Assembly (NCBI GenBank): GCA_016748015.1
Contig: JAAOMT010000776.1
Coordinates: 679,496 to 743,495 of the forward strand
Direction: 5' to 3'
DNA length: 64,000 nucleotides
DNA from: Geosiphon pyriformis uo1
Lineage: Eukaryota; Fungi; Glomeromycota
Position numbers and translations under genes: made by a program. This document shows, one piece after another, positions 752 to 51,969 of the stretch; position 1 is the first letter of the stretch; the number at the start of each line of letters is the position of its first letter. Below the pieces are notes generated by a model. It searched no databases. It was not told where the DNA came from and worked only from the letters and a program-made list of their open reading frames with translations.

Positions 752-1759
752 NCATCCCCAACCGCTTTTGGCCTTATATTTATTACCACTGCCATTGGAA
801 TTACCATTTCCGGATCCAATGTTTCCATTACCATTACCATTACCATTACCATTATCACCAATAGCGGTTTCGCCGCCTACACCAGAGCCGGAACTAATTG
901 CAGTTACAACTTGATCAGGAGATTTATTGGTGACAACAACGGTTTTAGTTTGTCCTGGAACATATGAAGTAATAGTGGTTGTGCTTCCTGCGCCAACGGC
1001 AGTTACAACGGCAGTCCTCGTTGGTCCTGGGACAAATGAAGTAATAGTGGTCGTGCTTCCTGCACCAACGGCAGTTACAACAGCGGTCCTCGTTGGTCCT
1101 GGGACAAATGAAGTAACAGTGGTCACGCTTCCTGCACCAACGGCAGTTACAACAGCGGTCCTCGTTGGTCCTGCGACAAATGAAGTAACAGTGGTCACGC
1201 TTCCTGCACCAACGGCAGTTACAACAGCGGTCCTCGTTGGTCCTGGGGCAAATGAAGTAACAGTGGTCACGCTTCCTGCACCAACGGCAGTTACAACAGC
1301 GGTCCTCGTTGGTCCTGCGACAAATGAAGTAATAGTGGTCACGCTTCCTGCACCAACGGCAGTTACAACAGCGGTCCTCGTTGGTCCTTGGACAAATGAA
1401 GTAATAGTGGTCGTGCTTCCTTCGCCAACGGCAGTTACAACGACGGTTTTAGTGCCTTGAGCCAGAGTTACAGTAGTAGTGATAGTCTTTGGTTGTGGCG
1501 CGAAAGTCTCGGTTACATATACAACTCCTTTATTGCCATTTCCATTGCCATTACCATTTCCATTACCAATGTTCCCGTTACCGTTACCGTTACCGTTTCC
1601 ATTGCTACCAAATTGGTAATTCAGGGCTTCACTCAAACCATCCACACCTGAACCGTACGAATCGTAGCTACTACCCGATTTCGATCCTGTTCCAACCGGA
1701 TTGGCGGCGACAAGTAGTGCGTTCAAGAGAAAACCTACGAAAACTGAAGCAGTCTTCAT
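752..1759 (-). CDS. Secreted Thr/Val-rich repeat protein 1 (7 x 24-aa repeats, Asn/Gly motifs on both sides)
   Basis: Signal peptide MKTASVFVGFLLNALLVAA|NPV; repeat PTRTAVVTAVGAGSVTTVTSFVxG; NG motifs at about 1527-1603 and 780-856. The 3' end runs into the gap as ...SGWG then TGn, so the stop may be TGA at 752-754. The ORF-track end at 677 is read-through of Ns. Confidence 0.9.
930..1460 (-). repeat. 72-bp coding tandem repeat, about 7 copies
   Basis: GCRGTCCTCGTTGGTCCT recurs at 1011, 1083, 1155 and onward with a 72-bp period. Confidence 0.95.
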
Positions 1760-1861
1760 TTTCTGTCGTGAGATTGAGAATTAAAGCCCGTAAGGTTTCT
1801 CAAAAAGATCAGTTTTGAAGTCCTCTTTGTGAATGATGGAAAGAGTTTTCTTCGAAAGCTT

Positions 1862-1873
1862 GCTTTTTTATAT
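1862..1873 (-). promoter_or_regulatory. Candidate TATA box for repeat protein 1
   Basis: TATAAAAAAGC on the minus strand about 110 bp upstream of the ATG; weak evidence in AT-rich DNA. Confidence 0.3.
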
Positions 1874-4800
1874 CAAATTTGTGTTTTTCACCCAGAGGAT
1901 TTTTAAGATTTCAAATGCAATTGTAGTTTCCGTGTTCATCTTTGTCTAAACATTTCTGCAAGCGAGATTCCAATATTGGATTGTTTACTTTTTTAATTCA
2001 ATAAATTGATTATCCGATTTTGGACAGTTTTTAATCTTCCAAAGGCTTTTGACAATTAATGGATGATCAATTTCTTTGTGGTTCATAAACGCTTTTTTAC
2101 ATAGTTTGACAGCACGGAGAATTTTAACAAATAATTCTATTTTTAATGATGAAAGAAACGTTTTTTCCAAAAAATTATTTTTACCATCTCAGAATGATTG
2201 TCAAGAACTTTCGAGAGTGGGCGCAAACATTTTATTTGGAAAATCATCCAGTTTAGGCAATATTCAATGAAAATAGGTTTAAATAATACACAAATATTAC
2301 CAAATTAAATCATTGTATAGGAAATTTCGAATCTCTTTTCTTTCCCGATTGCACGCAAAAGATAACAGGTCCTGTTTACATTATTAAAGAATATTTTTAA
2401 TACTTTCCCGTTTGAACAAATATCGGGAGAAAGGCACTGTGGATTGTTTATTTTTTTGTTTAGACCCTAGTGTATTCTACCTTTTCATTTTGCTAAAACA
2501 GGAACTCAATAGAAGAAAATTTTAAGCAAAAAGAAATGATAAAACTTTGCGAAATAAAGATTAGATTCGCACAAAAATTTGATCTATAACCTTCTACATT
2601 AAATTTAGATAGCATGATAACTTACATTCTAGGATTTCAATATTATGATGACTAATTTTTAATCTTTGTTGTTTTTTGAAAATATAATTAGTTGGCTTAA
2701 TGGTAACTAATTAAATCTGGCGCATACAATATCGAAGCTTGACTCATTTCTGCATGTTATTAATGCTATCACATCGTGAGAATTCTTCAAAAAATGCTAA
2801 AAGTGTTTTTTTTTTGGTTTAAGACGAGTTAAGTAAATAAAAGTTTTTATTTATTTAAAGAAATCTTTCTTAAGTTACCAAATCTTCTCATTTCCACATT
2901 CTATAATAATAATAATAATAATAATTGATTGACGTTGTTTGGAAGGTAATTTTCTAGTCATTAAAAGCTCGTCTCAATAATTTTACTAAAAATTTTAACT
3001 TTAAGAGCTTGATGCCGCCGAAATTATTTTTGACCGGTTTTTTAGAGTAAAAATTTAGCTATTGTTCATGTTGAGATCAACTTTCGTTTTTAGCATTAAA
3101 AGTGTTGGTTCATTAACAACAAAAAACTTGATTTTATTTAGAGCGAATATCAAGAATCAGGCAATCAAGTTGGATCACAAGCAAAATTTGATTCAAGAAT
3201 TTTTTTGATCCAATTTGTAGCTGTTAAAACATTTTTCTTTGTTCAATACAAATTTATCTTAATGGAGACAAAAAGTTTAATGTGCGAATTGATCAACATC
3301 ATTTTTGGCAAAGAATTTCATTCAATTATATATCTTTCAATAGGATTTTGATTCCCATTGCACGACGATCGGTCAATAATTTTCGGCAAGAAATGCTTTA
3401 GCTACTCGATTTGTATTGAAAGTGCCATCTTTTCTCAAGTATCCCGTTAACCTCCTAAACATACTGTTGCAAAGTTTCATCATAAAACTTAGAATTCATA
3501 ATATGCCGAAAACAAAATAGTTTAGTTTTTTCCTTCATACAAAAACCATCCAAAGCAAAAAACTTTCTACGACCTTTTGGTCTTGGACGAACTAGGCGTT
3601 TTCTCTTTTGTCAATGTTCAATTGTGGTTGGGAACAGTTACAATGCTATTTGATCAGAGAGATAAGGTTTTTTTTCCAGTTATCAACAGGTTTCAGTTTT
3701 TAAACTTTCATTATCATTGGCGTATTATTTGGTAGATTTTTTATACATGCAAGTGATTTTAAATGTTAACCAATTGTGCGATATGAAATGTCTACTCCAT
3801 TTGTATCTAGTTTAGTAACATTTTTTTTTTGCATAAACAAAGAATTTTATGAATATATTGAACTAATTTTTTACGATAAATGTTCCATCATCTTCATACT
3901 TATAATAAATTTTGTTTTATTGCGTTTTATTCAGATCTTGTTGAGTAAAAAATGAATTTTTTTTTATAATTTGTAACATTTAAAAGAGTTTTAATTATTA
4001 ATTAAAAATATAATTTCTTCAATATATTTCAAAATACCAAATACTTAAAATATTGTAATTAATGATTAAAAAATAATAGTATTAAAAAGTTGAATGAAAA
4101 AATTCATATAATTACCGACAACATTTATTCATTCAAGAAACACTGAATAAATTAAATTATTACAGAACCATAACCAAATTTTTGCTTGATAAAAAACATA
4201 ACATTATTATTATAAATATTTTATTGACTAAAAATTTATGACTAAATTAATTTATAATATTCTAGTTTAAAGATACAAAGTATTTATTTAAAAAAAAATA
4301 GAATAGAGATTTTATTAAGATAAAAATTAAAAGAATTTTGATTAATCAATAAGAATAAAATATTATCAAAAATAAAAAAATTATATATATGGCAATAAAT
4401 CAATTATTATATAATATAATGTTATATTATAATATTTTAATTTATACTTCAAAATTTAGATTGAAATTTTAAATTGAAATATCAATTTTATTATGAAATT
4501 AAATTATGATTACATTTTTAAATTAGATTATTATTAAATTTTATGATTGTTTTTGATTTGATAATAATGTAGATTATTATATATTCAAAAAAAAAATTAT
4601 TAACAAATTATATAAATAGTAAAGAAATATTTAAAATATTTAATATTTATTTTAGATTCAATAATTAATAACAATAAGATAAGTTTTGAAAAAAAAAATT
4701 TGTTGAACGATTTTGCAACATTTAATTAAAATTAATAAAAAATTTTAATTAACAAATTGTTGTGCACATTATATTATTATTAATTTAAAACATAAAAAAC

Positions 4801-5307
4801 TATATATTCAAAAAAATATTTTGATTATTCTGCAAAATTTTACTAAAAAAATAGTTTCTTTAGAGTTTCGAATTCATATCTTTATTAATAATTAAAGATT
4901 TTTCAAAAAAACATAATTTTATAAAATCTTTATAAAAAAACTCCATTTCGTGATCAATTAGTTGAATATATTGCAAAAAAATAGAGTTATTCAAATCTCA
5001 AATATCGATAAAATAAAAAGACTTTAAACATCTTTTATTAATAGAAATACCAAAAATGATCTTTCTTAATAAAATACAAAAATGATAAATTGTTACAAAG
5101 AACATCATCTAAATTAATAGTATGACAAAAAGAAAGAGAGTAGTACAATAAGTCTGCTAAAAAAATACATTCATGAGTATTACACTGTGATAAAAAAAAT
5201 ATCTTTTTCTATGGAAGAAATATTCTGAAAGTCTGAATTGATGAATCTTTCAGTAGATCGGTTTGAAAAATTACAAAAAGCCATAACCAGTTAAATCATC
5301 AGTTGAA

Positions 5308-6387
5308 TTACCAATCAGTACCATATTTACTACCACTATAACCACCACCACCACCTATATTACCTAATAAACCACTTAAATCAAAAGCGGCACTTTTAGA
5401 ATTTCCATTTCCGTTTTCATTACCATTGTTACTACCATAGTTCTTGCTTCCGTTACTGTTTCCATTACCACTACTTCCGCCTCCATAACTACTTCCGCCT
5501 CCATAACTATATCCGCCTCCATATCCGCCAGCAGCAATAGTTGGGCCTGCTACGGACTTGGTCACGGTTTGGTACACAGGATTACCGGTGACATATACGA
5601 CCGTGGTTGATGTGACTGGGTCCGCATAACGTGTTGAAGTTACGTAACGAGTGGCTGCGGGTTCATAATAAATACTAGTCGAATAGACAGTTTGTTGTGG
5701 TGCGTTAACAGTTACCACACGAGTGGCTGGGGCTGGATAATAAGTACTAGTGACATAGACAGTTTGTTGTTGAGCGTTAACAGTTACCAAACTAGTGGCT
5801 GGGGCTGGATAATAAGTACTAGTAGCATATACAGTTTGTTGTGGTGCGTTAACAGTTACCAAACGAGTGGCTGGGGCTGGATAATAAGTACTAGTGGAAT
5901 AGACAGTTTGTTGTGGTGCGTTAACAGTTACCAAACGAGTGGCTGGGGCTGGATAATAAGTACTAGTGGAATAGACAGTTTGTTGTTGAGCGTTAACAGT
6001 TACCAAACGAGTGGCTGGGGCTGGATAATAAGTACTAGTGGAATAGACAGTTTGTTGTTGAGCGGTAATAGCTACAACCTTAGTGGCTGGGGCTGGATAA
6101 TAAGTACTAGTGGAATAGACAGTTTGTTGTTGAGCGGTAACAGCTACAACCTTAGTGGCTGCTGGTGCATAATAAACGCTATTCCCACCGACTTCGCCTT
6201 GATTAACGTATTTTTGGCCGGAGTTATAGTTGCCATTGTAAACTCCATTACTATCACCAACATTTCCATTACCGTTGTAATTACCATTTTCATTAGCACT
6301 ATCAACACTTCCACTAGAATAAGTTTTAACAGGATTTGCAAAAATGAGAGCGGCGTTTAAAAGAAGTCCTAGTAAAAGAGAACGCAT
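5308..6387 (-). CDS. Secreted Thr/Val/Tyr-rich repeat protein 2 (7 x 24-aa YYPAP repeats, Asn/Gly motifs on both sides, Gly/Tyr tail), 359 aa
   Basis: True ATG at 6387: MRSLLLGLLLNAALIFA|NPV, similar to the signal peptide of protein 1. Repeat YYPAPATRLVTVNAxQQTVYSTST; GGYGGGYSYGGGSSYGGG segment; uninterrupted ORF. Confidence 0.92.
   Translation of the reverse strand: MRSLLLGLLLNAALIFANPVKTYSSGSVDSANENGNYNGNGNVGDSNGVYNGNYNSGQKYVNQGEVGGNSVYYAPAATKVVAVTAQQQTVYSTSTYYPAPATKVVAITAQQQTVYSTSTYYPAPATRLVTVNAQQQTVYSTSTYYPAPATRLVTVNAPQQTVYSTSTYYPAPATRLVTVNAPQQTVYATSTYYPAPATSLVTVNAQQQTVYVTSTYYPAPATRVVTVNAPQQTVYSTSIYYEPAATRYVTSTRYADPVTSTTVVYVTGNPVYQTVTKSVAGPTIAAGGYGGGYSYGGGSSYGGGSSGNGNSNGSKNYGSNNGNENGNGNSKSAAFDLSGLLGNIGGGGGYSGSKYGTDW
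5670..6175 (-). repeat. 72-bp coding tandem repeat, about 7 copies
   Basis: ATAATAAGTACTAG recurs at 5881, 5953 and neighbouring units with a 72-bp period. Confidence 0.95.
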
Positions 6388-6522
6388 TTTAAAATGAATT
6401 TTCTTTTTACGAATTGGAAGTGAAGTGAAAAACAATGAAATGTAAGTGCTTGATATATATTTTTTTCTATCAAGTTACTTTGGAATGAGGATAAAATTAT
6501 TAAAGTCTCTGTGAAGGACCTT

Positions 6523-6533
6523 GGCTTTATATA
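6523..6533 (-). promoter_or_regulatory. Candidate TATA box for repeat protein 2
   Basis: TATATAAAGCC on the minus strand about 140 bp upstream of the ATG, a position similar to the motif before protein 1. Confidence 0.3.
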
Positions 6534-9500: not shown

Positions 9501-9811
9501 TAAATAAAAGATAATATTAATTAATTTAAAAAAGTAATCAAATAAAAGATCTTTTTTTGACTAATTAAATAAAAAATAATTAGTATAAATTGAGAAAAAT
9601 TTTGATAACCAAATTTTAAAAAAATAATCCAAATAACAAATAATAATTTTTTTTTTGGGGGGGGGGGAAAGTTTTAATTAAATCTAATTTAATCACATCT
9701 ATTTCATATAACATATGCACTTTTTACATAAAACTAACCATCTGAATTTATTTTAAAACTATTCTAAATTAAACATTCCAAATAAATTATCTCTTATATT
9801 CTTATGATATA

Positions 9812-11063
9812 CAGTGTGTTGCAAAAAAAATTGGACAAAAATGCACATCACAAAACTTGATACAGTTTAAGTTAGTTTGTGGCGGTTGAATTAGGAAGTG
9901 AATGCTAAGAATAATTGGCTAAATATGATAAATTTTTTTCACGCGTTTTACTAATAATTTTTTTAGACATTTTCTTGCACAATGCTACCTTCCAAGCAAG
10001 AAACACAGCGCCAAACTGTATTATATTTTTGGGATGAAGGGATATGAGACGCAACTGAAATAAAATAGCGAACAAATGTACCATGCTCTATTATCTATAA
10101 TATCCTTAAAAAACAGGAATGGTGGAGCATGCGGGTGGAAATGGTCGGCCGCGAAAAATTAAAGGAGATGCATCATGAACATTAAGACAATACCTCTGTC
10201 GAGATTCTTTAATATCTTTGAGGACTTTGAAAATAAAATTAGCAAAAAAGAATGTAGACATTTCTTCTAGCACTATCCAAAGGCATTTAAATAATCATGG
10301 ATATAAAAAAGACTTGCCTTTGGCAACTCCAATGATCACCAATCTCCACAAGGAAGATTGTGTAAAGTGGGCTCATGAACATCTCAATGATAATTGGAAA
10401 AGAACTGTTTTTTCAGATAAAACAGCTTTTTGTCTATTCCGAAATACAGTAAAACGTTAATATAAAGGCCAGCGCCCAATTCGTGCTATACCAAAAGATC
10501 GAACAAAAATTATGGTGTGGGGTGGTTTTTATGAGAAAGAAAAGGTAAGTTTATTTTGTTTTACCCAAATAATGAATGCTAAATTCTATGTAGAAATTAT
10601 TTACCTGGGATAAGAGGAATGTTAGGGAATGAATGGCGGTTTCAACAGGACAATGACCCAAAGCACACAAGCCGTCTAGCCAAAGCCTTTCTTCAAGAGA
10701 ATATGCCTGAAGTTATAACTTGGCCATCTATTAGTCCTTACTTGAATTCCATTGAAAAATTATGGGCTATTGTGAAAAGGAATGTGGAGAAGCGTATGCC
10801 CAAAAATCGGGATGAATTAGAACAGTTTATGAAGAAAGAGTGGCGAGATATTCCGTGATTTACCCTAATTGGGTTAGTGGAATCAATAAACACCATTGTA
10901 AGATGATAATTGCGAATATGGGGGAAAGAATATCATACTAATTTTTTTTTAATAAAATCATATGCTTTTTAGCTTTCTAATGGTATATAATTTATATCTT
11001 TTGGTGAATTGGATAAAGTACAATGATTATTTTTTTCCGTCCAATTTTTTTTGCAACACACTG
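9812..11063 (+). mobile_element. Full-length (1252 bp) Tc1-family DD34E transposon, non-functional
   Basis: Perfect 25-bp TIRs CAGTGTGTTGCAAAAAAAATTGGAC (9812-9836 and 11039-11063), flanked by TA on both sides. Confidence 0.95.
9982..10941 (+). pseudogene. Tc1 transposase pseudogene
   Basis: Motifs GRPRK, WKRTVFSDK (FSDE), MVWGGF, FQQDNDPKH and WPSISPYLNSIE, with 34 residues between the second D and the E. Several stops and frameshifts. Confidence 0.93.
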
Positions 11064-12552: not shown

Positions 12553-15500
12553 TTAAGTTCTAAAAAATCGTTTCCAGTATGACGATCCATTACCATTGCC
12601 ATTGGCATTTCCGTTTCCGTTTCCGACATTACCATTTCCATTACCATTACCATTTCCTGATCCTGAATCAACAGACGGGTGAGCTATCACTGTTGCTTTT
12701 GGTGCAACGGTTGTTAAGGTCTGGGTTACAGGTGGTCCAACGAGTGTAGTAGTGACGGTCTTAACACTTCCTGGAGCGGTGACAGTAATTGTCTGAGTAG
12801 ATCCTTGACCAACAACGGTGCTAGTGACAACTTTGGATGGTCCAGGTACAGTTACTACCGAGGTTTGAGTGGTCCCAGGTGCAACGACAGTGCTTGTGAC
12901 AACTTTGGATGGTCCAGGTACAGTTACTACCGAGGTTTGAACTGATCCTTGACCAACAACAGTGCTAGTGACAACTTTGTTTGGTCCAGGTACAGTTACT
13001 ACCGAGGTTTGAACTGATCCTTGACCAACAACAGTGCTAGTGACAACTTTGTTTGGTCCAGGTACAGTTACTACCGAGGTTTGAACTGATCCTTGACCAA
13101 CAACAGTGCTAGTGACAACTTTGTTTGGTCCAGGTACAGTTACTACCGAGGTTTGAACTGATCCTTGACCAACAACAGTGCTAGTGACAACTTTGTTTGG
13201 TCCAGGTACAGTTACTACCGAGGTTTGAACTGATCCTTGACCAACAACAGTGCTAGTGACAACTTTGTTTGGTCCAGGTACAGTTACTACCGAGGTTTGA
13301 ACTGATCCTTGACCAACAACAGTGCTAGTGACAACTTTGTTTGGTCCAGGTACANNNNNNNNNNNNNNNNNNNNNNNNNNNNNNNNNNNNNNNNNNNNNN
13401 NNNNNNNNNNNNNNNNNNNNNNNNNNNNNNNNNNNNNNNNNNNNNNNNNNNNNNNNNNNNNNNNNNNNNNNNNNNNNNNNNNNNNNNNNNNNNNNNNNNN
13501 NNNNNNNNNNNNNNNNNNNNNNNNNNNNNNNNNNNNNNNNNNNNNNNNNNNNNNNNNNNNNNNNNNNNNNNNNNNNNNNNNNNNNNNNNNNNNNNNNNNN
13601 NNNNNNNNNNNNNNNNNNNNNNNNNNNNNNNNNNNNNNNNNNNNNNNNNNNNNNNNNNNNNNNNNNNNNNNNNNNNNNNNNNNNNNNNNNNNNNNNNNNN
13701 NNNNNNNNNNNNNNNNNNNNNNNNNNNNNNNNNNNNNNNNNNNNNNNNNNNNNNNNNNNNNNNNNNNNNNNNNNNNNNNNNNNNNNNNNNNNNNNNNNNN
13801 NNNNNNNNNNNNNNNNNNNNNNNNNNNNNNNNNNNNNNNNNNNNNNNNNNNNNNNNNNNNNNNNNNNNNNNNNNNNNNNNNNNNNNNNNNNNNNNNNNNN
13901 NNNNNNNNNNNNNNNNNNNNNNNNNNNNNNNNNNNNNNNNNNNNNNNNNNNNNNNNNNNNNNNNNNCTGTGTGGTCCAGGTACAGTTACTACCGAGGTTT
14001 GAACTGATCCAGGACCGGTGATAGTGTTGGTGACAACTCTGGCTGGCCCAGGTACATTTACAATCGAGGTTTGAACTGATCCAGGACCGGTGATAGTGTT
14101 AGTGACAACTCTGGCTGCTCCAGGTACAGTTACTACCGAGGTTTGAACTGATCCAGGACCGGTGATAGTGTTGGTGACAACTCTGGCTGGCCCAGGTACA
14201 TTTACAATCGAGGTTTGAACTGATCCAGGACCGGTGATAGTGTTAGTGACAACTCTGGCTGCTCCAGGTACAGTTACTACCGAGGTTTGAACTGATCCAG
14301 GACCGGTGATAGTGTTGGTGACAACTCTGGCTGGTCCAGGTACATTTACAATCGAGGTTTGAACTGATCCAGGACCGGTGATAGTGTTAGTGACAACTCT
14401 GGCTGGTCCAGGTACAGTTACGGTTGAGGTTTGAACTGATCCAGGACCGGTGATAGTGTTAGTGACAACTCTGGCTGGTCCAGGTACATTTACAATGGAG
14501 GTTTGAACTGATCCAGGACCGGTGATAGTGTTAGTGACAACTTTGGCTGCTCCAGGTACAGTTACTACCGAGGTTTGAACTGATCCAGGACCGGTGATAG
14601 TGTTGGTGACAACTTTGTCTGGTCCAGGTACATTTACAATCGAGGTTTGAACTGATCCAGGACCGGTAATAGTGTTAGTGACAACTTTGTTTGGTCCAGG
14701 TACAGTTACTACCGAGGTTTGAACTGATCCAGGACCGGTGATAGTGTTGGTGACAACTCTGGCTGGTCCAGGTACATTTACAATCGAGGTTTGAACTGAT
14801 CCAGGACCGGTGATAGTGTTAGTGACAACTTTGGCTGCTCCAGGTACAGTTACTACCGAGGTTTGAACTGATCCAGGACCGGTGATAGTGTTGGTGACAA
14901 CTCTGGCTGGTCCAGGTACATTTACAATGGAGGTTTGAACTGATCCAGGACCGGTGATAGTGTTAGTGACAACTTTGGCTGCTCCAGGTACAGTTACTAC
15001 CGAGGTTTGAACTGATCCAGGACCGGTGATAGTGTTGGTGACAACTCTGGCTGGTCCAGGTACATTTACAATCGAGGTTTGAACTGATCCAGGACCGGTA
15101 ATAGTGTTAGTGACAACTTTGTTTGGTCCAGGTACAGTTAAAATTGAGGTTTGAGTAGATCCAAGGCCAACAACGGTGCTAGTGACAACTTTGTTTGGTC
15201 CAGGTACAACTTCAGTTTTTGTGACAACGCTCCCAGGTCCAGTTACAGTTGTTACCGCGGTTTGAGTAGCGCCAGGTGCAACGACAGTGCTTGTTACAAC
15301 TTTGTTTGGTCCAGGTACAGTTACAATTGAGGTTTGAGTAGATCCAACGCCAACAACGGTGCTAGTGACAACTTTGTTTGGTCCAGGTACAACTTCAGTT
15401 TTTGTGACAACGCTCCCAGGTCCAGTTACAGTTGTTACCGCGGTTTGAGTAGCGCCAGGTGCAACGACAGTGCTTGTTACAACTTTGTTTGGTCCAGGTA

Positions 15501-15834
15501 CAGTTACAATTGAGGTTTGAGTAGATCCAACGCCAACAACGGTGCTAGTGACAACTTTGTTTGGTCCAGGTACAACTTCAGTTTTTGTGACAACGCTCCC
15601 AGGTCCAGCTACAGTTATTACCGAGGTTTGAGTGGCGCCAGGTGCAACGACAGTGCTTGTGACAACTTTATTTGGTCCAGCAACTGTTACAATTGAAGTT
15701 ACAGTGTTTCCAGGAGCTACAACGGTACTTGTTACTACTTTTTCTGGTTCATTATTTCTTTTTTCGAGATTGTTAAGTGGAGTAGCTGCTGCCAGAAGTA
15801 CCTGCAAGAGCAGGATAAACACTAGGGAACGCAT
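12553..15834 (-). CDS. Large secreted Thr/Val/Pro/Gly repeat protein 3 (24-aa repeats, C-terminal Asn/Gly motif); true length uncertain because of an internal gap
   Basis: ATG at 15834: MRSLVFILLLQVLLAAA|TPLNNLEKR (signal peptide plus Kex2-type KR). Repeats VVTNTITGPGSVQTSVVTVPGPAR and VVTSTVVGQGSVQTSVVTVPGPNK. The gap at 13355-13966 lies inside the array, so joining the two halves is an inference. Confidence 0.88.
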   Translation of the reverse strand: MRSLVFILLLQVLLAAATPLNNLEKRNNEPEKVVTSTVVAPGNTVTSIVTVAGPNKVVTSTVVAPGATQTSVITVAGPGSVVTKTEVVPGPNKVVTSTVVGVGSTQTSIVTVPGPNKVVTSTVVAPGATQTAVTTVTGPGSVVTKTEVVPGPNKVVTSTVVGVGSTQTSIVTVPGPNKVVTSTVVAPGATQTAVTTVTGPGSVVTKTEVVPGPNKVVTSTVVGLGSTQTSILTVPGPNKVVTNTITGPGSVQTSIVNVPGPARVVTNTITGPGSVQTSVVTVPGAAKVVTNTITGPGSVQTSIVNVPGPARVVTNTITGPGSVQTSVVTVPGAAKVVTNTITGPGSVQTSIVNVPGPARVVTNTITGPGSVQTSVVTVPGPNKVVTNTITGPGSVQTSIVNVPGPDKVVTNTITGPGSVQTSVVTVPGAAKVVTNTITGPGSVQTSIVNVPGPARVVTNTITGPGSVQTSTVTVPGPARVVTNTITGPGSVQTSIVNVPGPARVVTNTITGPGSVQTSVVTVPGAARVVTNTITGPGSVQTSIVNVPGPARVVTNTITGPGSVQTSVVTVPGAARVVTNTITGPGSVQTSIVNVPGPARVVTNTITGPGSVQTSVVTVPGPHXXXXXXXXXXXXXXXXXXXXXXXXXXXXXXXXXXXXXXXXXXXXXXXXXXXXXXXXXXXXXXXXXXXXXXXXXXXXXXXXXXXXXXXXXXXXXXXXXXXXXXXXXXXXXXXXXXXXXXXXXXXXXXXXXXXXXXXXXXXXXXXXXXXXXXXXXXXXXXXXXXXXXXXXXXXXXXXXXXXXXXXXXXXXXXXXXXXXXXXXXXXXXVPGPNKVVTSTVVGQGSVQTSVVTVPGPNKVVTSTVVGQGSVQTSVVTVPGPNKVVTSTVVGQGSVQTSVVTVPGPNKVVTSTVVGQGSVQTSVVTVPGPNKVVTSTVVGQGSVQTSVVTVPGPNKVVTSTVVGQGSVQTSVVTVPGPSKVVTSTVVAPGTTQTSVVTVPGPSKVVTSTVVGQGSTQTITVTAPGSVKTVTTTLVGPPVTQTLTTVAPKATVIAHPSVDSGSGNGNGNGNGNVGNGNGNANGNGNGSSYWKRFFRT
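12790..15680 (-). repeat. Coding tandem array with three blocks: 183-bp units, alternating 72-bp units, and near-identical 72-bp units
   Basis: AGTGACAAC followed by the reverse complement of KTEVVPG recurs at 15181, 15364 and 15547 (183 bp). About 16 72-bp units lie in 13967-15130 and about 8 in 12790-13354. Confidence 0.93.
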
Positions 15835-16989
15835 ATTAAAGATGAAAAAGACAAGCAGAGCTTGCTTCAAAATTTTAAGAGTGAANNNNNNNNNNNNNNN
15901 NNNNNNNNNNNNNNNNNNNNNNNNNNNNNNNNNNNNNNNNNNNNNNNNNNNNNNNNNNNNNNNNNNNNNNNNNNNNNNNNNNNNNNNNNNNNNNNNNNNN
16001 NNNNNNNNNNNNNNNNNNNNNNNNNNNNNNNNNNNNNNNNNNNNNNNNNNNNNNNNNNNNNNNNNNNNNNNNNNNNNNNNNNNNNNNNNNNNNNNNNNNN
16101 NNNNNNNNNNNNNNNNNNNNNNNNNNNNNNNNNNNNNNNNNNNNNNNNNNNNNNNNNNNNNNNNNNNNNNNNNNNNNNNNNNNNNNNNNNNNNNNNNNNN
16201 NNNNNNNNNNNNNNNNNNNNNNNNNNNNNNNNNNNNNNNNNNNNNNNNNNNNNNNNNNNNNNNNNNNNNNNNNNNNNNNNNNNNNNNNNNNNNNNNNNNN
16301 NNNNNNNNNNNNNNNNNNNNNNNNNNNNNNNNNNNNNNNNNNNNNNNNNNNNNNNNNNNNNNNNNNNNNNNNNNNNNNNNNNNNNNNNNNNNNNNNNNNN
16401 NNNNNNNNNNNNNNNNNNNNNNNNNNNNNNNNNNNNNNNNNNNNNNNNNNNNNNNNNNNNNNNNNNNNNNNNNNNNNNNNNNNNNNNNNNNNNNNNNNNN
16501 NNNNNNNNNNNNNNNNNNNNNNNNNNNNNNNNNNNNNNNNNNNNNNNNNNNNNNNNNNNNNNNNNNNNNNNNNNNNNNNNNNNNNNNNNNNNNNNNNNNN
16601 NNNNNNNNNNNNNNNNNNNNNNNNNNNNNNNNNNNNNNNNNNNNNNNNNNNNNNNNNNNNNNNNNNNNNNNNNNNNNNNNNNNNNNNNNNNNNNNNNNNN
16701 NNNNNNNNNNNNNNNNNNNNNNNNNNNNNNNNNNNNNNNNNNNNNNNNNNNNNNNNAAAAATTTAAAATGTATATATTTCTGTTTATCTTTTTAAAAAAA
16801 AAAGCGTTATTTTTTGTTGAATTCAATACCATCACCCAATATAAATTGTGAAAGATAATCATCTGATTTAAATCGAATTTAAAAAAAGACGGAATGTTCA
16901 ATACACATTTCATTTTTTATAATCATAACCTGATAAGGAAAATTTTTTCCAGTTTGATTTTGCCACTTATGCATTTTTGTAGAATTATG

Positions 16990-16993
<4 letters not shown>

Positions 16994-17035
<42 letters not shown>

Positions 17036-17045
17036 TATACACACA
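16994..17045. repeat. (CA)n microsatellite, interrupted
   Basis: Directly visible. Confidence 0.9.
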
Positions 17046-17062
17046 TAAAATGCAGTAAAATC

Positions 17063-17157
<95 letters not shown>
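17063..17157. repeat. (TAG)n microsatellite, about 31 units
   Basis: Directly visible; it explains the poly-T and poly-L ORFs. Confidence 0.97.
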
Positions 17158-17588
17158 ATAGTAGGAGTAGATTGATTTTCATATAGTTTTCCAGAAGCAA
17201 AATTCAAAAGATGGGACCATGAACTGAATCCAGTAAAAAATGGGGAATTTCTTCAATTCCATCTAGAAAGAATACGTAAAAATTCTAAAAAGATAGATAG
17301 ATGAAATTTAATAATTCTTTGAGTAAATATTTTGAAAACAAACCTCAAGTTAAATTAACGGNNNNNNNNNNNNNNNNNNNNNNTCCCTTCTAACCATTAG
17401 GAAATGTTATTAGTTGATCAAAGAATTTCTTTTCTACCCCCCGAGAGAATCTAAAAATAGAGTTTTATTCAAAAAAGTTCAAGATCTGAGATTAGTGTAA
17501 TTGACTAGCTAAACCATCATACACACTTAAAAAAAAAGGATTATCAATTCGTAAAAATATGTTGTTTTAATTATTGGACAGAATGATA

Positions 17589-17589
<1 letters not shown>

Positions 17590-17628
<39 letters not shown>
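17590..17628. repeat. (ATT)n microsatellite
   Basis: Directly visible. Confidence 0.9.
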
Positions 17629-20600
17629 TGAAATTTTTACTCTGGATATTTAGTGTGTGAAATTCGAGAAAAATTTTCATAATTAAAAAATTAAAAAATC
17701 TTGTTGAAAACATGCAAAGAATTTTTCAAAGGGTCGTTTAGGGAATGACTAAAGAAGCTAGTTGAAATTTTCATTATCAAATACACCAAATATTATTTTT
17801 TTTACCGTATTTAGGAATTCTGGCCTTAATGCAAAAATTAAAAAAATTATTTTTAAAAAATTATTTTTAAAATTATTATTTTTAAAATAAAATCCTAATT
17901 AAACAGATTCGGGAATTTTTGTATGTTGGCATACAGCGGCGAAATCTCACTTTGGTTAATTTACAAACACAACATGATAAGTTTTTTCAGGAAAAAAATC
18001 CTGTGTTCATAGAATATTGAACCCTTAATAATAAACAATGACGAACACCTAAAATTCATATTAGGCTCAGTTCGTCTAACAACACAGAATAAAAAGGCTG
18101 TGTATGTGTGTATGTGTGTTCATGTTTTGTACTCCCCACATTGTGCATGCCTTATGTTTGATAACTTATAAAGGATATCTTAAATTTTAGCCTTTTATTG
18201 GATTTGTATTAAATCCAAAAAGTTTTAAGATTCACACAATAATTCCTGAAAATGGTAAATTTAATTTAGATAATCTTTAGCCTTTCGTTTTTAGTTTACA
18301 TAAATGAATGATTTACAATAAAATCTTTAAAAAGGTTTTTTCGGCTGTGAATATTGAGAACTTTTAATAGATAAATGACGCCTAATTTACTTCCTTTTTT
18401 TTTTTTTTTGAATAACCATATATATTTATCTACAATGAACAAAAACACCTTTTTCAGTAACTCTCCTTATTAGCTGATAGGTTGACGAGATTATTAAATA
18501 ATAAAATTCTAAATCTTTTACGTAAAAAAATTAAAAGGAAAAACTTTTTAGTCAATCCATTTTTGGTAATCAGCCTTTGTGCTGGTTTACCTGTCAAGTT
18601 TATATTTTTTAAATTCAGGTTTTTCGTCTTCAAAGATTTTCCAAGAATAAAAATTAGATCATAAAAAGTTTGATAGATTTCGAAATCAGGTTAAAAATAT
18701 GTTTTAATCTTCCTTTGACAGTGAACCAATAAAGACTAAATTTTACGAGACAAAAAAGTTTAGATTTTTTTTTTTAAAAAAAATCGAATCAAATATTATC
18801 GATTTGTGTTTTATTTCGAAAATTCATTTATTAAATTTGAATTTTTATTATTTAATTCCAACTTTGGAAGTCGCAAAAGTATTAATCTTTTCAATTCTTG
18901 AGAAAAAGAGATATCGGAAATGAGAAAAAATTTGGATTAGGGGATTTTTAAAGTTAGTTAGTTTGAGGCTAATTTACAAAAAAAGAATTCTAAAATTGTT
19001 CTTTGAATTGAGATAGAAACATTGGAATTTGAAATTTTTTTTTACAAATAAACTCTACTATTAAGTTTCAAAGTTTAAGCTAATCCTAGTGTGTATTATT
19101 AGGCCTTTTTTTCAAAATGATAAAATTTAAAGTTTTAATCGGGTCATTTAGGTTTATTTTTTTATACCTGAAAATTAATACAAATGATTGACTTGAATTA
19201 TTTCTGACTGAGTCAAAGATAAATATCAAAGAACTGCAAAAAGACAATTGAAACAAGCTTTAGCTGGATTTTTCCGCTTTAGGATCAATAGAATAAAATG
19301 AAATGAAATGAAATGAAACGAAACGAAACGTATGGTAAAAAGGAGTAAACCTTTCTTGTTCTTTTCCTTGACTCCCGAAATTAAATTCCAATTTAGAGAA
19401 GAACTTTTTTCTTTTGCTACTTATTATCTCATTAAATTTGGTTTGAGACATTAAAATAAAGTCTCGAATTCGTTTAAAGCAAAAAACCTTTATGGTACGA
19501 TTATATAATGTTTCTAGTTTTTCTTTAATTTAAACTTTCGGAATATGTCTCTATCGTGGTCCAAATAAATAAATAAATAAATAAATAAATAAAATTATTA
19601 TCCAGTACAAATTAAGTTTATCTTTGAAAATACCCGCAATCATAAATTTGTCCAATACGCATGGGTTCTTTGGAAAACTTACTACTACCATATTGGTGGG
19701 GAAGAATGGATGGATTGATGAATTGATAGATTAATAGATTTATAGATTAATGGATTGATGGATGGATCTCAATTGGGAACAGATAACAGCCTTAAATATT
19801 TTTGGATATCAAAGGACAAATTTAAATTTTTGAAAAAAAGGTAATACCAACCAAAAAAAAAGATTTAGGTTTTAAGAACTAAGCAAATTAAAATTAGTCG
19901 TCGTAATTTTTTATTATCGAACCTAGTAGGGATTGGTTGGAAATAATATCTCATGTGTAAAATTTTGCATGTGGTTTCCTTTGAGAAAGATTTCGTTCTA
20001 ATATTAGAATAATCTCTTGAGGTCTTTCCAAATAAGTATTCTTGATTTCTTGATTTATGATAGATTTATAAAAAGCTTTAAAAAATAAATATCTCGATCT
20101 TTTCTAACGTGAAAAATGTTAAAATATCGGATATTTTCTACTCTCATTCAAGAGATGAAAGGTCAATTTAGCGTTAAAACGTCAAAAGAGTTTAAGTATA
20201 AAAAGCTTTTTTTGGTATTTTTGTGAATGAAAAAAAAAAAAAATCATTTTTTAAACGGGCTCATTCATTCCCCATTATAGGACTACAATTTCGTAAAGAA
20301 AAAAGTAAAAGAAAATATTGTTCAAATGCCCATAAAATTATTTAGACTCAGATTCACGCTGCACAATATTAAATTAAAAGAAAAATCTTGAATTGGAAAC
20401 CTTAATTGTGTTATTTGCAATCAATCATAAGATTTGAAATGGGTTTCGGTAAAAGAGAAGAGGGATTTATTTACGTCATTTCAACATGTCAATAGTTAAA
20501 AAGTACATGTATAAGGGATTTCCTGTCTTGATACAAAATCTTGGCTGATCCAGAGAGCGTTTGATGGCTCATAATAGATTTTTGTTAGCAAGTGTGTATA

Positions 20601-21194
20601 TCAATTAAATATTTTTCTTTATTTGTGGATTGGATGTTTAAAGTGAATTCATTGGCAAAATATTCAAATTGGGAGAAGTTGCTAGATATTTCGATCTAAT
20701 ATTTTTTGTAATTCTGTTAGGAATCCAAATTTGATATTTTAGAGTTATAGTAATTTGGCATGTTTTAATTTACTTTTTAGGAATTTTTTTATTAGCTTTC
20801 GAATTATGTCTTAAAAATGCACTATCGAAAATCTTAAAATTACTTGAAATTCTTTTATTTTGATAAGCGACTTCTATTGTAATATATTGGTTCATGAAAA
20901 AAAGACTTGAAATTCAATTGAATTATTCAGAATTGCCAAATATGTAATTTGAGCACAATTTTGGATGAATAAATATCTTTATTTGAAGAGTTTAAACAAG
21001 TCGAAATAGAAAATTTTTTGTTATGGACCAAAAACAAAAATTTATTATCACAAACAAATGATCTTTACAAAAAATTGTGTTCACTGCTAAACCAAACTTC
21101 TTTAACTGTACAATAAAATTGTAAATGAATTTCTTTTTTTAATCAAAACCGCTTCTTGTGATCAGGAATCAAAGCAACCGAGGATGTTTTTACC

Positions 21195-21250
21195 CATCAA
21201 CATCAACATCAACATCAACATCAACATCATCAACAACATCATCAACATCA
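21195..21250. repeat. (CATCAA)n simple repeat
   Basis: Directly visible; it explains the DVDVDV ORF. Confidence 0.85.
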
Positions 21251-23217
21251 TATGGTTGATGTAATTTTTGACCAAAGAAGCTTTCGCCGCAACTTTCTTG
21301 ATTTGAGCGGAAAATTTCGCATCGACATTTTTTGGTGAAAGAAAACTTGGTTAAAAATTCCTGCCAAAAACAAACAAATAAATAAATAAAGAAATAAAGA
21401 AATAAAGAGGCAAACAAACAAAAAAAACTTTGAAAATTTTTTATGGTAACCGAGAATTCTTACCAAATTCCACGGTTTTTATCAGGTTTGACTAAGGTGT
21501 ACATTGAAATTGAGATCGATATCCACATTTCTACTTTTTTTGTTTACCTTTGGGTCATTTATTAAACGAAACTCCATATTTGTATTGGTCAAACCAACAA
21601 TTTTGTCGGCAAGTTTTGAAATGAGTTCCTTCGCCCTTAAACTTTGAGGATCTCTTTGAAAAGTTCGAGATATACATTCTGAAAATATTTTGATTAGAGT
21701 GATGAGAAAAAGAACAAAAAGAAAAAAGAAAAGAGTTATAATGATGTAATGATATCATGACGTTAAAGGATTTCTGTTTCGTTATTTGTTCCAAAAGTTA
21801 AATAAATACATACAGGTATTTTTTTTTTTCAATATTTTCATGTAACTTCTACAATGAAACCTGAAGTATAAGGAAAGATTGATTTTTTCAATTTTGACAA
21901 ACTTAAACTCAAAAATATATCATGAGAATTTCATAATTTATTTTCATCTCAATGCTTGAAAGCCTTTAAATCTTTCTTAAAGAACACATTTTAATCTTCG
22001 TAACATGCCTAAAACTTGGAATTGTATAAAAAATCTGATATGATGTGATATCATATCATCCTTTTTTTTTAAAAAAAAAATTTTGGGTTCAAAATCACAA
22101 TCCCCTTCAATTTAAAGAAAGATAAACCATTTTCAGCGAATAATAACTCTTTTGAAGAATATTGAATAGATGTTAGATTTTAAATCAAATGAATTACATG
22201 TATCTGAAATCAAGTATTGATGAGAAAAAATACCCAGTTGAACCATGATTTAATGATTTAATGATTTAATTATAACTTTTATTGATTTCAAAATTCAAGA
22301 AATTTATTACCAACAAAAGTGATCAAATTACTCTCAACTTGGAATTAAAAGTATGACAAGGAAGCTTTCATTATCATTACATCAAAATCTTTTCAATGGT
22401 ATAAGGGTTTATTTGGTTTTTAGTTTACAAAAGAGTTATTATATTGAAAGAAAAAAACTCTAAAATAAATTATTTTTCTTTTTTGAATTTCCAATAAGAC
22501 ATTTAAAATGAAATACAATTTTTAGTTCACCGATAATGGTCTAGGATTTTATTTTTTACTTATCGATTGTAATCTCTCAGTATATATGAGGTAGAAATCT
22601 AGAAATATTTTACATATTCCTTTTAATTGTCTCAATATGTTTCGAAGAAAGAAAAGTAATTCTTTGTGTTTTGAAAATTATTTACTTTTAAAAAATATCG
22701 ACCTTTTACTAAGAGAGAGAGAGATAACATATTATAGAGAGATAACATATTATAGAGAGATTGACTGATTGAATGCGATATTGCGACATGAAATCGGGAA
22801 ATCATTGAATCTTTTGGATCGGCCATTATTTTTAGAATAGTGTCACTTTTGAAAGACATTCTGCAAAGAACTTCTACTTTAAAAATAAACAAATTCCCAC
22901 AGATCATGCAGAATTGAAATAGCAAAACAATAAAGTTTTCGTAAGCGCATTATCTGGTTTCTTTTTCGAACCTCCAAGAGAGAAGTTGAATAACCGGGTA
23001 AACATGATGAATTTGGAAAAAGTCAAGAACAATAAATTTCAATAGTAATAACATTTTCATTATGATGAATTAAGATCGTTCCATCGCTTAAAAGCTTCTT
23101 AAAGAAGGAGTAGGAATAATAATGTTCTCAATAAAGCCTTTCCTTAACCATTCAACTGGATAGGGTGACCCCATTGGTCCTGCCTCAAAAAAGAATGTAA
23201 CCATTAAAATTTGAAAG

Positions 23218-23280
23218 AATGAATGAATCAATGAATCAATGAATCATTGAATGAATCAATCAATCAATGAATCAATCAAT
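23218..23280. repeat. (AATG/AATC)n compound simple repeat
   Basis: Directly visible. Confidence 0.8.
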
Positions 23281-24048
23281 CCATTATCAAAAATAGTTAT
23301 TGAGAATTTCAGTTCACATAAAAAAAGTTTTTCAAAAAAGTTTTAATTAATATCTTTTCTCACTTCAAAAACATTCAATTTTGTTTTAAAGCCTCGAATT
23401 AATTCAAAACTGATATTAATTAGAATGAATGAATGAAAAGTCAAGTTGCTAAAAGATCTAAAATCTACGCATAGAGAAAAATAATTTATGTTGGAAAGAT
23501 TCAAATTTATAGTTCCAATTCTATCTTTAACTTAAATAAAATTTTAAAACTGATTGTCAAAGTATGGCTCATTAATTTTAAATATGATCAATTTTTTTAT
23601 AAATATCTTTATTTTCTGCAAGGTTAAAAAACCAACCAAGTCAATTTAACGACATAAGGATGATAAAGCAATAATAAATTTTAAAATTTTCAGAAACTAA
23701 ATGTGAAAACCTATAATTCACGTCTCTACTTGATTTTTTTTATCATTATAATTCAATCAAACTTCTCGATTGAACAGTTTTTTCTGAAAATAAAATTAAC
23801 ATTAAAACATTAAAATTTTTGATGATCGAAAATCCAAAAAATTGTCATTTTGCAAATGATAAATTTTAAATTGGTAATTTTCGAAAAAGTTCTTTTCTAA
23901 AAACAAAATTTTCATGTCTCGTCAATAAATGAAAGAGAGTTTCGTATTATTCCAAAAATTTAATCTTTTTTTAAATCTCTTTCTCTACTATCGTTACATG
24001 TTTTAGATTGAAAAAAGAATATATAAATATAAATAGAAATAGAAATAG

Positions 24049-24167
24049 AAATTGCTTTGTTTAATCTCTTTTATGAAAGACATTAAAATTGCTTTGTTTA
24101 ATATCTTGTATGAAAAGCATTAAAATTGCTTTGTTTAATCTCTTGTATGAAAGACATTAAAATTGTT
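24049..24167. repeat. 37-bp minisatellite, 3 copies plus a partial one
   Basis: Unit AAATTGCTTTGTTTAATCTCTTGTATGAAAGACATTA, with ATTG at 24051, 24088, 24125 and 24162; no spacers. Confidence 0.92.
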
Positions 24168-24606
24168 TTTTGATAGGTAATTGTCCTTATCTCTCTTGAA
24201 ATAATTACATTATCATTTCTCAGTTTTTTATAATTTTAATTTAAAATAAAAAGTTTTACTTGTGTGATTTAAATAAATATTAAATATCAATAAATAGTCC
24301 TCAAATAAAAATTCCCTATTTTTTTGCCTAATAAAGTTAATGGATTTTTTTGTTATGATTAAAATTTTGATATTAAATCTATCTATCTTTTCATGGTAGA
24401 AAAATCCAAATTTTCTGTTTGGCTCATACACTCAGTCTGCCCAATAAAGAGAAAGTAATAATTCAATGAAAAAGTGGTCAAAAAGATTTTGGAAATCCAT
24501 AAAAACTTCAAAGAAAATCGTGTTTATTCTTTTCAAAAAAAAAAATAAAAAACTTTCAATTTATTAACTTTTGAGAACCCTTTTAAGAATTTTAAAAATC
24601 CTAATT

Positions 24607-25647
24607 ATGAAGTACTCACCCACAATCTTTCTATGTCTCATTTCCATCGCCCATCTTGTCAATTCAACCCCCATCACGAGGGGAATTCAACTTTCAAAAA
24701 GACAATCTGGTGACGCAAATTTAAACGGAATTGTGAACGGACAATTCAATAAAGGAACCGACAATGGAAGCAAAAGTGGAGCTAATAATAGCGGCGTCCT
24801 GAATGGCTCAGGAAACGGAAATTTAAATGAAGGAGACTCAAACGGAAAAAGCAGTGGAAACAATAATAACGGTAGTTTGAATGGGATCGTCAGCGGAAAT
24901 GCAAATAACGGCAACTTTAACGGAGTTAACAATGGAAACAATAATTCCGGTAGTTCAAATGGGGTCGGTAACGGAAATGAAAATAACGGCTCCTTAAATG
25001 GAGTTAACAATGGAAACAATAATGTCGGTAATTTAAATGGGGTCGCTAATGGAAATGCAAATAACGGCACCTTAAACGGTGTTAACAATGGAAACAATAA
25101 TGTCGGTAATTTAAATGGGGTCGCTAATGGAAATGCAAATAACGGCAGCTTAAACGGAGTCAACAATGGAAACAATAATATCGGTACTTTGAATGGTTCC
25201 GCCAACGGTAATGGGAACACCGGAAGTGGAAATGGTAGCTCTAATGGCTCCGGTAACGTTGGTTCTCAAACTGTAATCAAGAAAGTAAAGGGTAAAAAGA
25301 ATGGAAAAAAAGTTGTGATTAAGAAAAAAGGAAAGAAAAATGGTATCAAAAATGGAAATAATAATGTTGGTTCGAATAATGGTGTGAAAAACGGAAATAA
25401 TAATATTGGTTCGAATAATGGTTCTAAAAACGGAAATAATAATATTGGATCAAATAATGGAACAAAGAATGGAAACGGGAACATTGGAGATAACAATGGA
25501 ACTAATAACGGAAATAACAATATTGGAAGCAACAATGGAACTAATAATGGAAACGGGAACATTGGAAGCAACAATGGAACTAATAATGGGAATAACAATA
25601 TTGGAAGCAATAATGGATCCGGAAATGGGAATGGAAATTCAAAGTGA
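24607..25647 (+). CDS. Secreted Asn/Gly-rich 13-aa repeat protein 4 with a central Lys-rich block, 346 aa
   Basis: ATG at 24607: MKYSPTIFLCLISIAHLVNS|TPITRGIQLSKR|Q (signal peptide plus Kex2-type propeptide). 14 units of NGxxNGNxNxGxx, then the Lys block, then 7 more units and a partial unit ending NGNGNSK. Confidence 0.92.
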   Translation: MKYSPTIFLCLISIAHLVNSTPITRGIQLSKRQSGDANLNGIVNGQFNKGTDNGSKSGANNSGVLNGSGNGNLNEGDSNGKSSGNNNNGSLNGIVSGNANNGNFNGVNNGNNNSGSSNGVGNGNENNGSLNGVNNGNNNVGNLNGVANGNANNGTLNGVNNGNNNVGNLNGVANGNANNGSLNGVNNGNNNIGTLNGSANGNGNTGSGNGSSNGSGNVGSQTVIKKVKGKKNGKKVVIKKKGKKNGIKNGNNNVGSNNGVKNGNNNIGSNNGSKNGNNNIGSNNGTKNGNGNIGDNNGTNNGNNNIGSNNGTNNGNGNIGSNNGTNNGNNNIGSNNGSGNGNGNSK

Positions 25648-26138
25648 AATTGTAACAATATTAAAACATTTTACATTGATTAGAAAATTTTTAAACTAAT
25701 ATCTTGAGATGAGATTTTCAAAAATGAATGCAACAAGTAAAAATCTTTAAAATTTTACTAGACTCACATAAACTTTTAATTCACTTGTTTAATAAATCTC
25801 TAGAAATTTTGATTCTTAATGTATCAAAATAGTTTTTTTGTATAGATCAAATGTAAAAAAAAGAATTATAATAATAATTTTTTTTAATTTATTTATTTTT
25901 AATAAAAATTTTACTCATTTTATTATTATTAAAATTTATTTCGAATAAAAATTTTACTCCTGCTTTTAAATTACATAAATAAATTAATTAAATTTTTTTA
26001 CTTTTACATTATCAAACTTTTTAGTGTTTTTTTTTAATAAATAAGTGATATAATATATATATATATATAAAGTATTACTTATATTAATTACACACACTAC
26101 TAATTATTTTTGAAATAATAATTGTATTATATTTTTAC

Positions 26139-51700: not shown

Positions 51701-51969
51701 TTTGGCTGTTAAGATATTTCATTTTTTTAGAAAGAGACTTTGATATTTAATTATAACAAGTTGCAAAATTACTTTAGAGTAATCTTTTAGACAAAATATT
51801 TGAAAAACTAAAAAAAATAGAAAGTTTAAAGACTCAATTAATCAATTAATAAAATACTAATTAACATTTTACTTTAGTTTCAAATAAGTGTTAAATCATA
51901 TATTAATCACATAAATACTAATATGTGGAAAAAAATCTTAGAGTAGATTAAATTAATTATATTTACTAA

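Follow-up and report, generated by a model that had tools for sequence, protein, structure and literature searches.

Four neighbouring genes for secreted-type repeat proteins in the genome of Geosiphon pyriformis raise the question of whether they form a dedicated system built around one long Asn/Gly repeat protein, or are a local group within a wider family. The DNA analysed (the window) is a stretch of 64 kb, C665:679496-743495 of the 128.3-Mb, 792-contig assembly. Leaving out reading frames based on runs of N and the antisense frames of the repeats, the only open reading frames (ORFs) of more than 150 residues in it are those of the four proteins, called here P1, P2, P3 and P4 (Table 1). 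An initial annotation had described them as four intronless genes with signal-peptide-type starts and without recognisable enzyme domain, and this description was confirmed: the ORFs are intronless, the N-termini are hydrophobic and signal-peptide-like as judged by hydrophobicity, Cys is absent or almost absent, and neither Pfam nor NCBIfam domains were found in P1-P4. The interpretation which we favour, with a probability of about 0.6, is that the locus groups together lineage-specific secreted repeat proteins of G. pyriformis, as a local cluster and not as a closed four-part machine.

The Asn/Gly repeat is most regular in P4. Residues 40-221 of this protein consist of 14 in-phase 13-mers of the pattern NGxxNGNxNxGxx, followed by a 26-residue Lys-rich linker, which corresponds to exactly two unit lengths and keeps the phase, and by seven further units and a partial last one. 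The initial annotation had put the number of units at about 22; the array is strictly phased, and the count is 21 units plus the partial last one. N1, G2, G6, N9 and G11 are invariant in 21/21 units, position 10 is the chief Ile/Val site (11 of the 21 units) and the autocorrelation of the sequence has its maxima at lags 13 and 26. Asn makes up 34% and Gly 23% of the protein; there are 18 N-x-S/T sequons, and a Lys-Arg (KR) pair is found at residues 31-32, behind the signal peptide. A look-up of the exact product returned nothing on record.

Two-unit Asn/Gly motifs had also been reported in P1-P3, and they are present there verbatim. The letters of each motif were shuffled 20000 times and rescored in all 13 phases against the position matrix of P4. 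Since the observed score was reached by only 0-12 of the 20000 shuffles (110 in the case of the P2 C-side motif), the motifs resemble the P4 unit in their order, beyond composition, at the level of sequence. No Asn/Gly motif could be detected elsewhere in the 64 kb by a six-frame scan.

The unit is widespread in the genome. P4 matched at least 69 stretches on at least 25 contigs of the assembly, and altogether the unit occupies 35 or more unlinked loci, in architectures of many kinds. The first-unit pattern NGNGNGN(I/V)G occurred at 32 sites, compared with 0 for the reversed control. Every family gene fetched had a signal-peptide-like start, and the products varied widely: some were nothing but array, up to 934 residues long, in others arrays and Ser/Thr/Val linkers took turns within one chain, others again had KR-separated modules with aromatic or His-rich tails, and in some a single unit sat on a Lys-rich or Cys-containing protein. 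Across the paralogues, with which P4 aligned at E values down to 1e-19, the unit has invariant N and G positions. Three of the paralogues, those on contigs C580, C701 and C615, are clearly KR-modular. The one at about 154.5-155.2 kb of C701 is a KR-separated precursor, the modules of which are 3-4 Asn/Gly units, a Gly-Trp run and a Gly-His or Gly-Pro-His/Tyr stretch. The self-contained four-gene system proposed in the initial annotation, with P4 as its scaffold or nucleator, is difficult to reconcile with this distribution over at least 35 unlinked loci and at least 25 contigs. The motif is common in unrelated, unlinked proteins, an outcome which the initial annotation itself had named beforehand as speaking against the proposal, and motif-capped Thr/Val paralogues of P1-P3 sit alone on other contigs.

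Among 1.84 billion representative proteins the profile search gave 204 matches at E ≤0.001. The best was KAG9292817.1 of G. pyriformis (E 2e-43), which is 99% identical to contig C580. This annotated model looks chimeric in sequence, because the genome shows a separate signal peptide for the repeat part: unrelated residues 1-347 are fused to a KR-modular Asn/Gly repeat gene (C580:248479-252498). Outside Glomeromycotina the period-13 unit was found in a Microdochium hydrophobin, a Mesorhizobium protein, a Flavobacteriales protein and three metagenome proteins; the latter were taken to be bacterial, because their tails resemble PEP-CTERM sorting signals. A word-indexed protein search with P4 returned weak matches only, which were later seen to carry the 13-mer, and no curated family model for the unit was found in Pfam or NCBIfam.

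P1, P2 and P3 differ from P4 in that each carries a 72-bp (24-residue) tandem Thr/Val repeat. They are mutually paralogous (P3 to P1, E 1e-30; P1 to P2, E 8e-7), and searching the whole genome with the profile of the subfamily revealed five genes only, the three of the cluster and one each on contigs C625 and C578. The latter two share signal peptide sequence and overall plan with P1-P3: a two-unit Asn/Gly motif directly after the signal peptide, a Thr/Val-rich body, an Asn/Gly motif and then Trp. The plan of the subfamily as a whole can be given as signal peptide, up to two Asn/Gly units, Thr/Val array, at least two Asn/Gly units, and Trp near the C-terminus. P2 ends in Trp and has a Gly/Tyr/Ser stretch ahead of its C-side motif, P3 carries Tyr-Trp and then a KR site at its end, and in P1 the Trp lies right ahead of an assembly gap. 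The Asn/Gly module stands at both ends in four of the five genes, and in P3 at the C end only. Its length is nearly constant: exactly two units at the N end in four of the five, and likewise exactly two at the C end in four of the five, the remaining gene having four. The end modules open with the usual first unit of the family, NGNGNGN(I/V)G, or with a close variant of it (P2). The C625 and C578 paralogues had no Asn/Gly array gene within a distance of about 5-10 kb.

With about 20-25% Gly+Asn, P1-P3 are not Gly/Asn-dominated, and judged by sequence only their end modules belong to the Gly/Asn-rich (GN-rich) family discussed below. P1 and P2 contain neither KR nor RR, and P3 and P4 have KR at their ends only. 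A hydrophobic C-terminal signal of the glycosylphosphatidylinositol (GPI) type is absent in P2, P3 and P4, which have hydrophilic ends (the end of P1 lies in a gap). The N-side and C-side motifs of one protein were no more alike than motifs of different proteins, and the DNA identity between motifs, 55-85%, gave no sign of recent gene conversion. A word-indexed protein search with P1 found no match, and an atlas feature search with P1 yielded scores ≤0.85 only, which are uninformative. The Thr/Val subfamily, five genes with three of them in tandem in the cluster, is new here.

The Asn/Gly family itself is not new, contrary to the possible novelty suggested in the initial annotation. GN-rich intrinsically disordered proteins (IDPs) are known from Ambispora leptoticha and Paraglomus brasilianum and, as GpRIC1-3, from Geosiphon (Schultz, Wu and Baumann 2022, PMC8786786). 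In a cDNA library 22%, 5% and 3% of the reads came from GpRIC1-3, respectively, and these proteins bear KR sites; most GN-rich proteins were scored as being without tandem repeat and were treated as disordered or amyloid-prone (PMC8786786). P4 has the features of this GN-rich (RIC-like) family, namely a secretion-type start, Gly/Asn dominance and sequence relationship to its members. A further source on the GN-rich IDPs and GpRIC1-3 is reportedly the thesis of Hoffrichter (2018).

Folds were predicted by AlphaFold2 from shallow inputs, P4 with 7 paralogous rows and P1 with 6 rows. The P4 model has a mean predicted local distance difference test score (pLDDT) of 66.8, with values of 70-84 in the first array, 57-78 in the second and below 50 in the linker, and it displays 11-residue strands with a period of 13. 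Foldseek found nothing in the PDB at E ≤0.001 for either the P4 or the P1 model. An exhaustive structural aligner returned beta-solenoids only for P4 (3p4g, Ag43, trimeric-autotransporter heads, 3ult and CsgA), and 3p4g was superposed with Z 12.9 and a root mean square deviation (rmsd) of 2.8 over 180 residues. The 14 units of P4 span about 14.6 rungs of 3p4g, a rung of which we take to be 19 residues. The aligned ranges imply one rung per 13-mer, and the P4 units probably stack into a very narrow parallel beta-solenoid. A rung of 13 residues is, to our knowledge, about as tight as in any known solenoid.

The Thr/Val array of P1 was modelled at pLDDT 80-91 and a predicted template modelling score (pTM) of 0.69, with two strands per 24-residue repeat. 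Its best match was Pontibacter CsgA 8c50 (Z 22.4, rmsd 9.0), the next match having Z 14.1, and the array is predicted to form a curli-like two-sheet beta-solenoid rod. The Asn/Gly two-unit ends of P1 had pLDDT below 50 and were modelled as disordered. The beta-solenoid reading of the initial annotation therefore agrees with the all-beta, solenoid-like model of P4, of moderate confidence, but not with the model of the two-unit ends. Profile searches against PDB sequences found no match, and an atlas fold search returned generic predicted solenoids only. A prediction of the complex of P4 residues 244-346 with P1 residues 288-335 scored 0.01 in a run made without controls, a value that speaks neither for nor against binding; the docking of P1-P3 onto P4 that had been proposed may take place, and gained no support here. 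Two other roles of the ends were also considered and dropped as unsupported: self-complementary head-to-tail joining, by the test of matched ends, and capping of the Thr/Val solenoid, the model leaving the motifs unfolded.

The following picture would account for the locus. P4 would be a further member of the large GN-rich (RIC-like) family with its 35 or more loci, and P1-P3 would be tandem duplicates within the five-gene Thr/Val subfamily, in which the Thr/Val array may be a central curli-like rod flanked by short Asn/Gly modules. All four proteins could be structural parts of the wall or the extracellular matrix, the Asn/Gly modules acting as general self-association or spacer modules, as they might in many secreted proteins. 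P4 would then neighbour P1-P3 because new genes arose locally by duplication, not because the four are functionally coupled. If the Asn/Gly proteins are ordered solenoids rather than disordered chains, fungi would possess a surface material of a new class, in which the rung of 13 residues is unusually tight, and the Thr/Val subfamily would show the Asn/Gly modules combined with a second, curli-like rod.

Several points weigh against this picture. AlphaFold2 is prone to produce solenoid models for repeats, and the present models rest on shallow alignments (7-8 paralogous rows), the overall pLDDT of P4 being 66.8. N-glycosylation of P4 at its 18 sequons, or O-glycosylation of the Thr/Val repeats, might block the solenoid folds. 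With 35 loci placed uniformly over 128 Mb, we estimate that an array gene would fall no further than 10 kb from the Thr/Val cluster with a chance of about 1%, and therefore some functional linkage stays possible. The near-constant two-unit length of the ends over five paralogues finds no explanation in this picture. Structural matches between solenoids often represent analogy rather than homology (PMC11812678).

The foremost alternative is that the Asn/Gly segments are disordered, hydrophilic and possibly glycosylated spacers; the solenoid models would then be artefacts and the motifs of P1-P3 flexible tails. The low pLDDT of the two-unit ends, the moderate values for P4, its 18 sequons, the lack of a significant Foldseek match in the PDB and the published classification of GN-rich proteins as IDPs (PMC8786786) are all in line with it. 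Disorder leaves unexplained, however, why N1, G2, G6, N9, G11 and the aliphatic preference at position 10 persist through hundreds of units from many paralogues, and why the phase is maintained across the P4 linker. Such strict period-13 conservation indicates a repeated fold or a repeated binding site, and we regard disorder of the Asn/Gly segments as unlikely, although it deserves serious consideration.

The constant two-unit length of the ends and the 1% proximity leave room for the ends to stack onto other Asn/Gly modules. The two-unit modules might accordingly be templated 'sticky ends', which fold only when stacked on other modules or arrays, and the many members of the family would assemble together, forming a modular extracellular lattice of amyloid-like kind in the wall of Geosiphon or at the symbiotic interface. 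Geosiphon is, as far as we know, the sole fungus with cyanobacteria inside its cells. Were it true, such a lattice would give eukaryotes a combinatorial parallel to the nucleation of curli; we consider it rather improbable.

A little less probable again is the dedicated four-gene system. Here P4 would serve as the beta-solenoid scaffold or nucleator to which P1-P3 attach by their two-rung motifs, joining fibres to one another in the manner of CsgB/CsgA or NWD2/HET-s templating. The motifs are genuine in-order copies of the P4 unit, they comprise exactly two units at most of the subfamily ends, they are modelled as unfolded when alone, as expected of a templated segment, and P4 lies only 8.7 kb from P3, at the chance given above. 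Against these stand the occurrence of the unit and of the first-unit form in 35 or more unlinked genes of varied architecture, the C625 and C578 paralogues without an array gene nearby, and the position of P4 on the opposite strand to P1-P3, past an assembly gap. The motifs of P1-P3 are, moreover, nearer to the family-wide first unit than to any feature specific to P4.

It is very unlikely that P1-P4 are precursors of signalling or antimicrobial peptides released by Kex2. The KR-modular paralogues on C580, C701 and C615, the KR sites of the GpRICs, the KR behind the signal peptide of both P4 and P3 and the one near the P3 C-terminus would fit such a role. Yet P1 and P2 lack KR and RR, and the end-only KR of P3 and P4 would lead to removal of a propeptide or a tail, without release of repeated peptides. 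Several KR-flanked cores, the feature of Kex2-processed repeat proteins, were found in paralogues elsewhere and in none of P1-P4. That the flat faces of the solenoids, with their regularly placed Thr or Asn, attach to a periodic surface (ice, a mineral, or a polysaccharide from either the fungal wall or Nostoc) is hardly credible, since the superposition of the models on the ice-binding solenoids 3p4g and 3ult, together with the TxTxT-like strands of the P3 repeats, amounts to a generic fold likeness without sequence relationship.

Transcript-like evidence for P2 came from X1, the only public run found to contain the P1-P2 stretch; its contigs were compared with this stretch. They covered only the coding parts of these two genes and the 5' leader of P2, those on P1 being short, and none were found in the 3.6 kb separating P1 and P2. 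Exact contigs on P2 lay at 5420-5710 and 6107-6465. The pattern fits cDNA, the kind of the run not being on record. The summed contig depth reached about 27700 at the P1 N-side motif (1521-1712), and it comes from other, abundant family transcripts, because the contigs diverge outside the motif. The abundance of family transcripts in X1 agrees with the published cDNA-library figures.

Table 1. Genes of the cluster, their Asn/Gly motifs and arrays, and the gap within P3. Positions are those of the window; the coordinates of P1-P4 were counted from the ATG starts.
Feature	Position	Strand	Evidence
P1: secreted-type Thr/Val repeat protein, 335 aa read	755-1759	-	ORF; 72-bp repeats 933-1441
P1 N-side two-unit Asn/Gly motif	1520-1603	-	4/20000 shuffles
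P1 C-side two-unit Asn/Gly motif	770-853	-	5/20000 shuffles
P2: secreted-type Thr/Val/Tyr/Gln repeat protein, 359 aa, complete	5308-6387	-	ORF; 72-bp repeats 5638-6147
P2 N-side two-unit Asn/Gly motif	6211-6288	-	0/20000 shuffles
P2 C-side two-unit Asn/Gly motif	5395-5466	-	110/20000 shuffles, weakest of five
P3, whole	12553-15834	-	ORF running across N gap 13355-13966
P3 N-terminal part: signal peptide, KR at residues 25-26, ~25 Thr/Val repeats of 24 aa	13967-15834	-	
N gap within P3, 612 N, length estimated	13355-13966		
P3 C-terminal part: ~8 Thr/Val repeats, Asn/Gly motif, Tyr-Trp-Lys-Arg and four residues	12553-13354	-	
P3 two-unit Asn/Gly motif, C-side	12577-12654	-	12/20000 shuffles
P4: secreted-type Asn/Gly repeat protein, 346 aa	24607-25647	+	ORF; AlphaFold2 model; family member
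P4 first array, 14 units	24724-25269	+	
P4 Lys-rich in-phase linker	25270-25338	+	
P4 second array, 7 and a fraction units	25339-25644	+	

Near the cluster the window contains runs of N at 705-752, 13355-13966, 15886-16756 and 17362-17383. The first, of 48 N, has taken the C-terminus of P1. The second lies within P3, which is most parsimoniously read from the sequence as one gene, because both flanks share the repeat type and the strand, while the start is found on one flank only and the end only on the other: on the high-coordinate side there are a start, a signal peptide and about 25 repeats but no stop, and on the low-coordinate side about 8 repeats of like kind, the C-terminal motif and the stop. 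The frame across the gap hangs on its estimated length of 612, which is divisible by 3 and corresponds to 8.5 repeat units, and therefore the length and the repeat number of P3 are not fixed by the assembly. The third gap begins 52 nt upstream of the P3 ATG and touches the 5' region only; the fourth is intergenic.

The window (GC about 25%, with long stretches down to 12-15%) is gene-poor outside the cluster, the regions 26000-34000 and 50000-62000 being free of ORFs at 12-19% GC. Between P2 and P3 lies a remnant of a Tc1/mariner-type transposase in two open frames (10179-10855, plus strand; HTH_Tnp_Tc3_2, E 2e-11; DDE_3, E 1e-9). A (TAG)36 microsatellite at 17063-17170 adjoins a TG/CA dinucleotide run and yields spurious poly-Thr and poly-Leu frames. 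An exon-sized ORF at 48204-48560 on the plus strand matches class 3 lipase (Lipase_3, E 1e-12), and another at 42898-43098, also on the plus strand, has a similar GxPRVGN motif without a Pfam match; the former and perhaps the latter probably belong to one or two intron-containing lipase genes.

Among known systems, the HET-s/NWD2 pair shares with the docking proposed for P1-P4 the concept of a short two-rung motif that folds only on a matching template. The rungs of HET-s are 21 residues long, and the protein is cytosolic and partnered with an NLR gene, whereas the units of P1-P4 are of 13 residues and belong to secreted-type proteins, and the sequences do not match. None of the translated window ORFs that were read looked like an NLR, no search aimed at NACHT or NLR domains having been made.

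The structures nearest to the P4 model are very tight beta-rolls (the trimeric autotransporter heads BpaC 7o23 and UspA1 3pr7, the Lolium ice-binding protein 3ult and the Marinomonas antifreeze protein 3p4g; Z 8.6-15). Like that model, they are built from short rungs in which Asn, Gly and small residues abound. In the trimeric autotransporter heads, 3ult and 3p4g the rungs are of 14-19 residues, in contrast to the 13 of P4; the rmsd is often 8 Å or more, and there is no sequence relationship.

Gly/Asn repeats are also known on the N-termini of class II hydrophobins, QID3, HCf-6 and the multipartite hydrophobins of Claviceps (Kubicek 2008, PMC2253510). There too an Asn/Gly repeat module is joined to a self-assembling fungal surface protein, and the Microdochium bolleyi hydrophobin has the period of 13. 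The partner, however, is a Cys-knot hydrophobin rather than a Thr/Val array and the host is an ascomycete; homology and convergence are both compatible with the likeness.

With curli the likeness lies in the P1 array model, which superposes best on CsgA 8c50 and has the strand-arc-strand repeat of about 20-24 residues and the two-sheet solenoid, and in the secreted type of both CsgA and P1. By contrast, the Thr/Val repeats show no Gln/Asn ladder consensus, partners of the csgEFG type are lacking, the host is a eukaryote, and the Pfam model Curlin_rpt had no match in P1-P4 at E up to 1. The curli likeness of P1 is probably an analogy between folds.

The GN-rich IDPs of early-diverging Glomeromycotina are secreted, contain more than 50% Gly+Asn, bear KR sites and occur in the same organism. 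The identical 13-mer is visible in the supplementary sequences of Amlep_AGL4 and Pabra_AGL2 (PMC8786786), and Amlep_AGL1 and AGL2 join a short Asn/Gly start to a Ser/Thr-rich body. P1-P3 differ from them by their lower Gly+Asn content (~20-25%) and by the absence of a GPI-type tail where the end can be read, and the 13-residue period, the solenoid model and a Thr/Val subfamily capped at both ends are absent from that report (PMC8786786). What is gained here, rather than a new system, is a subfamily and fold predictions for a known family.

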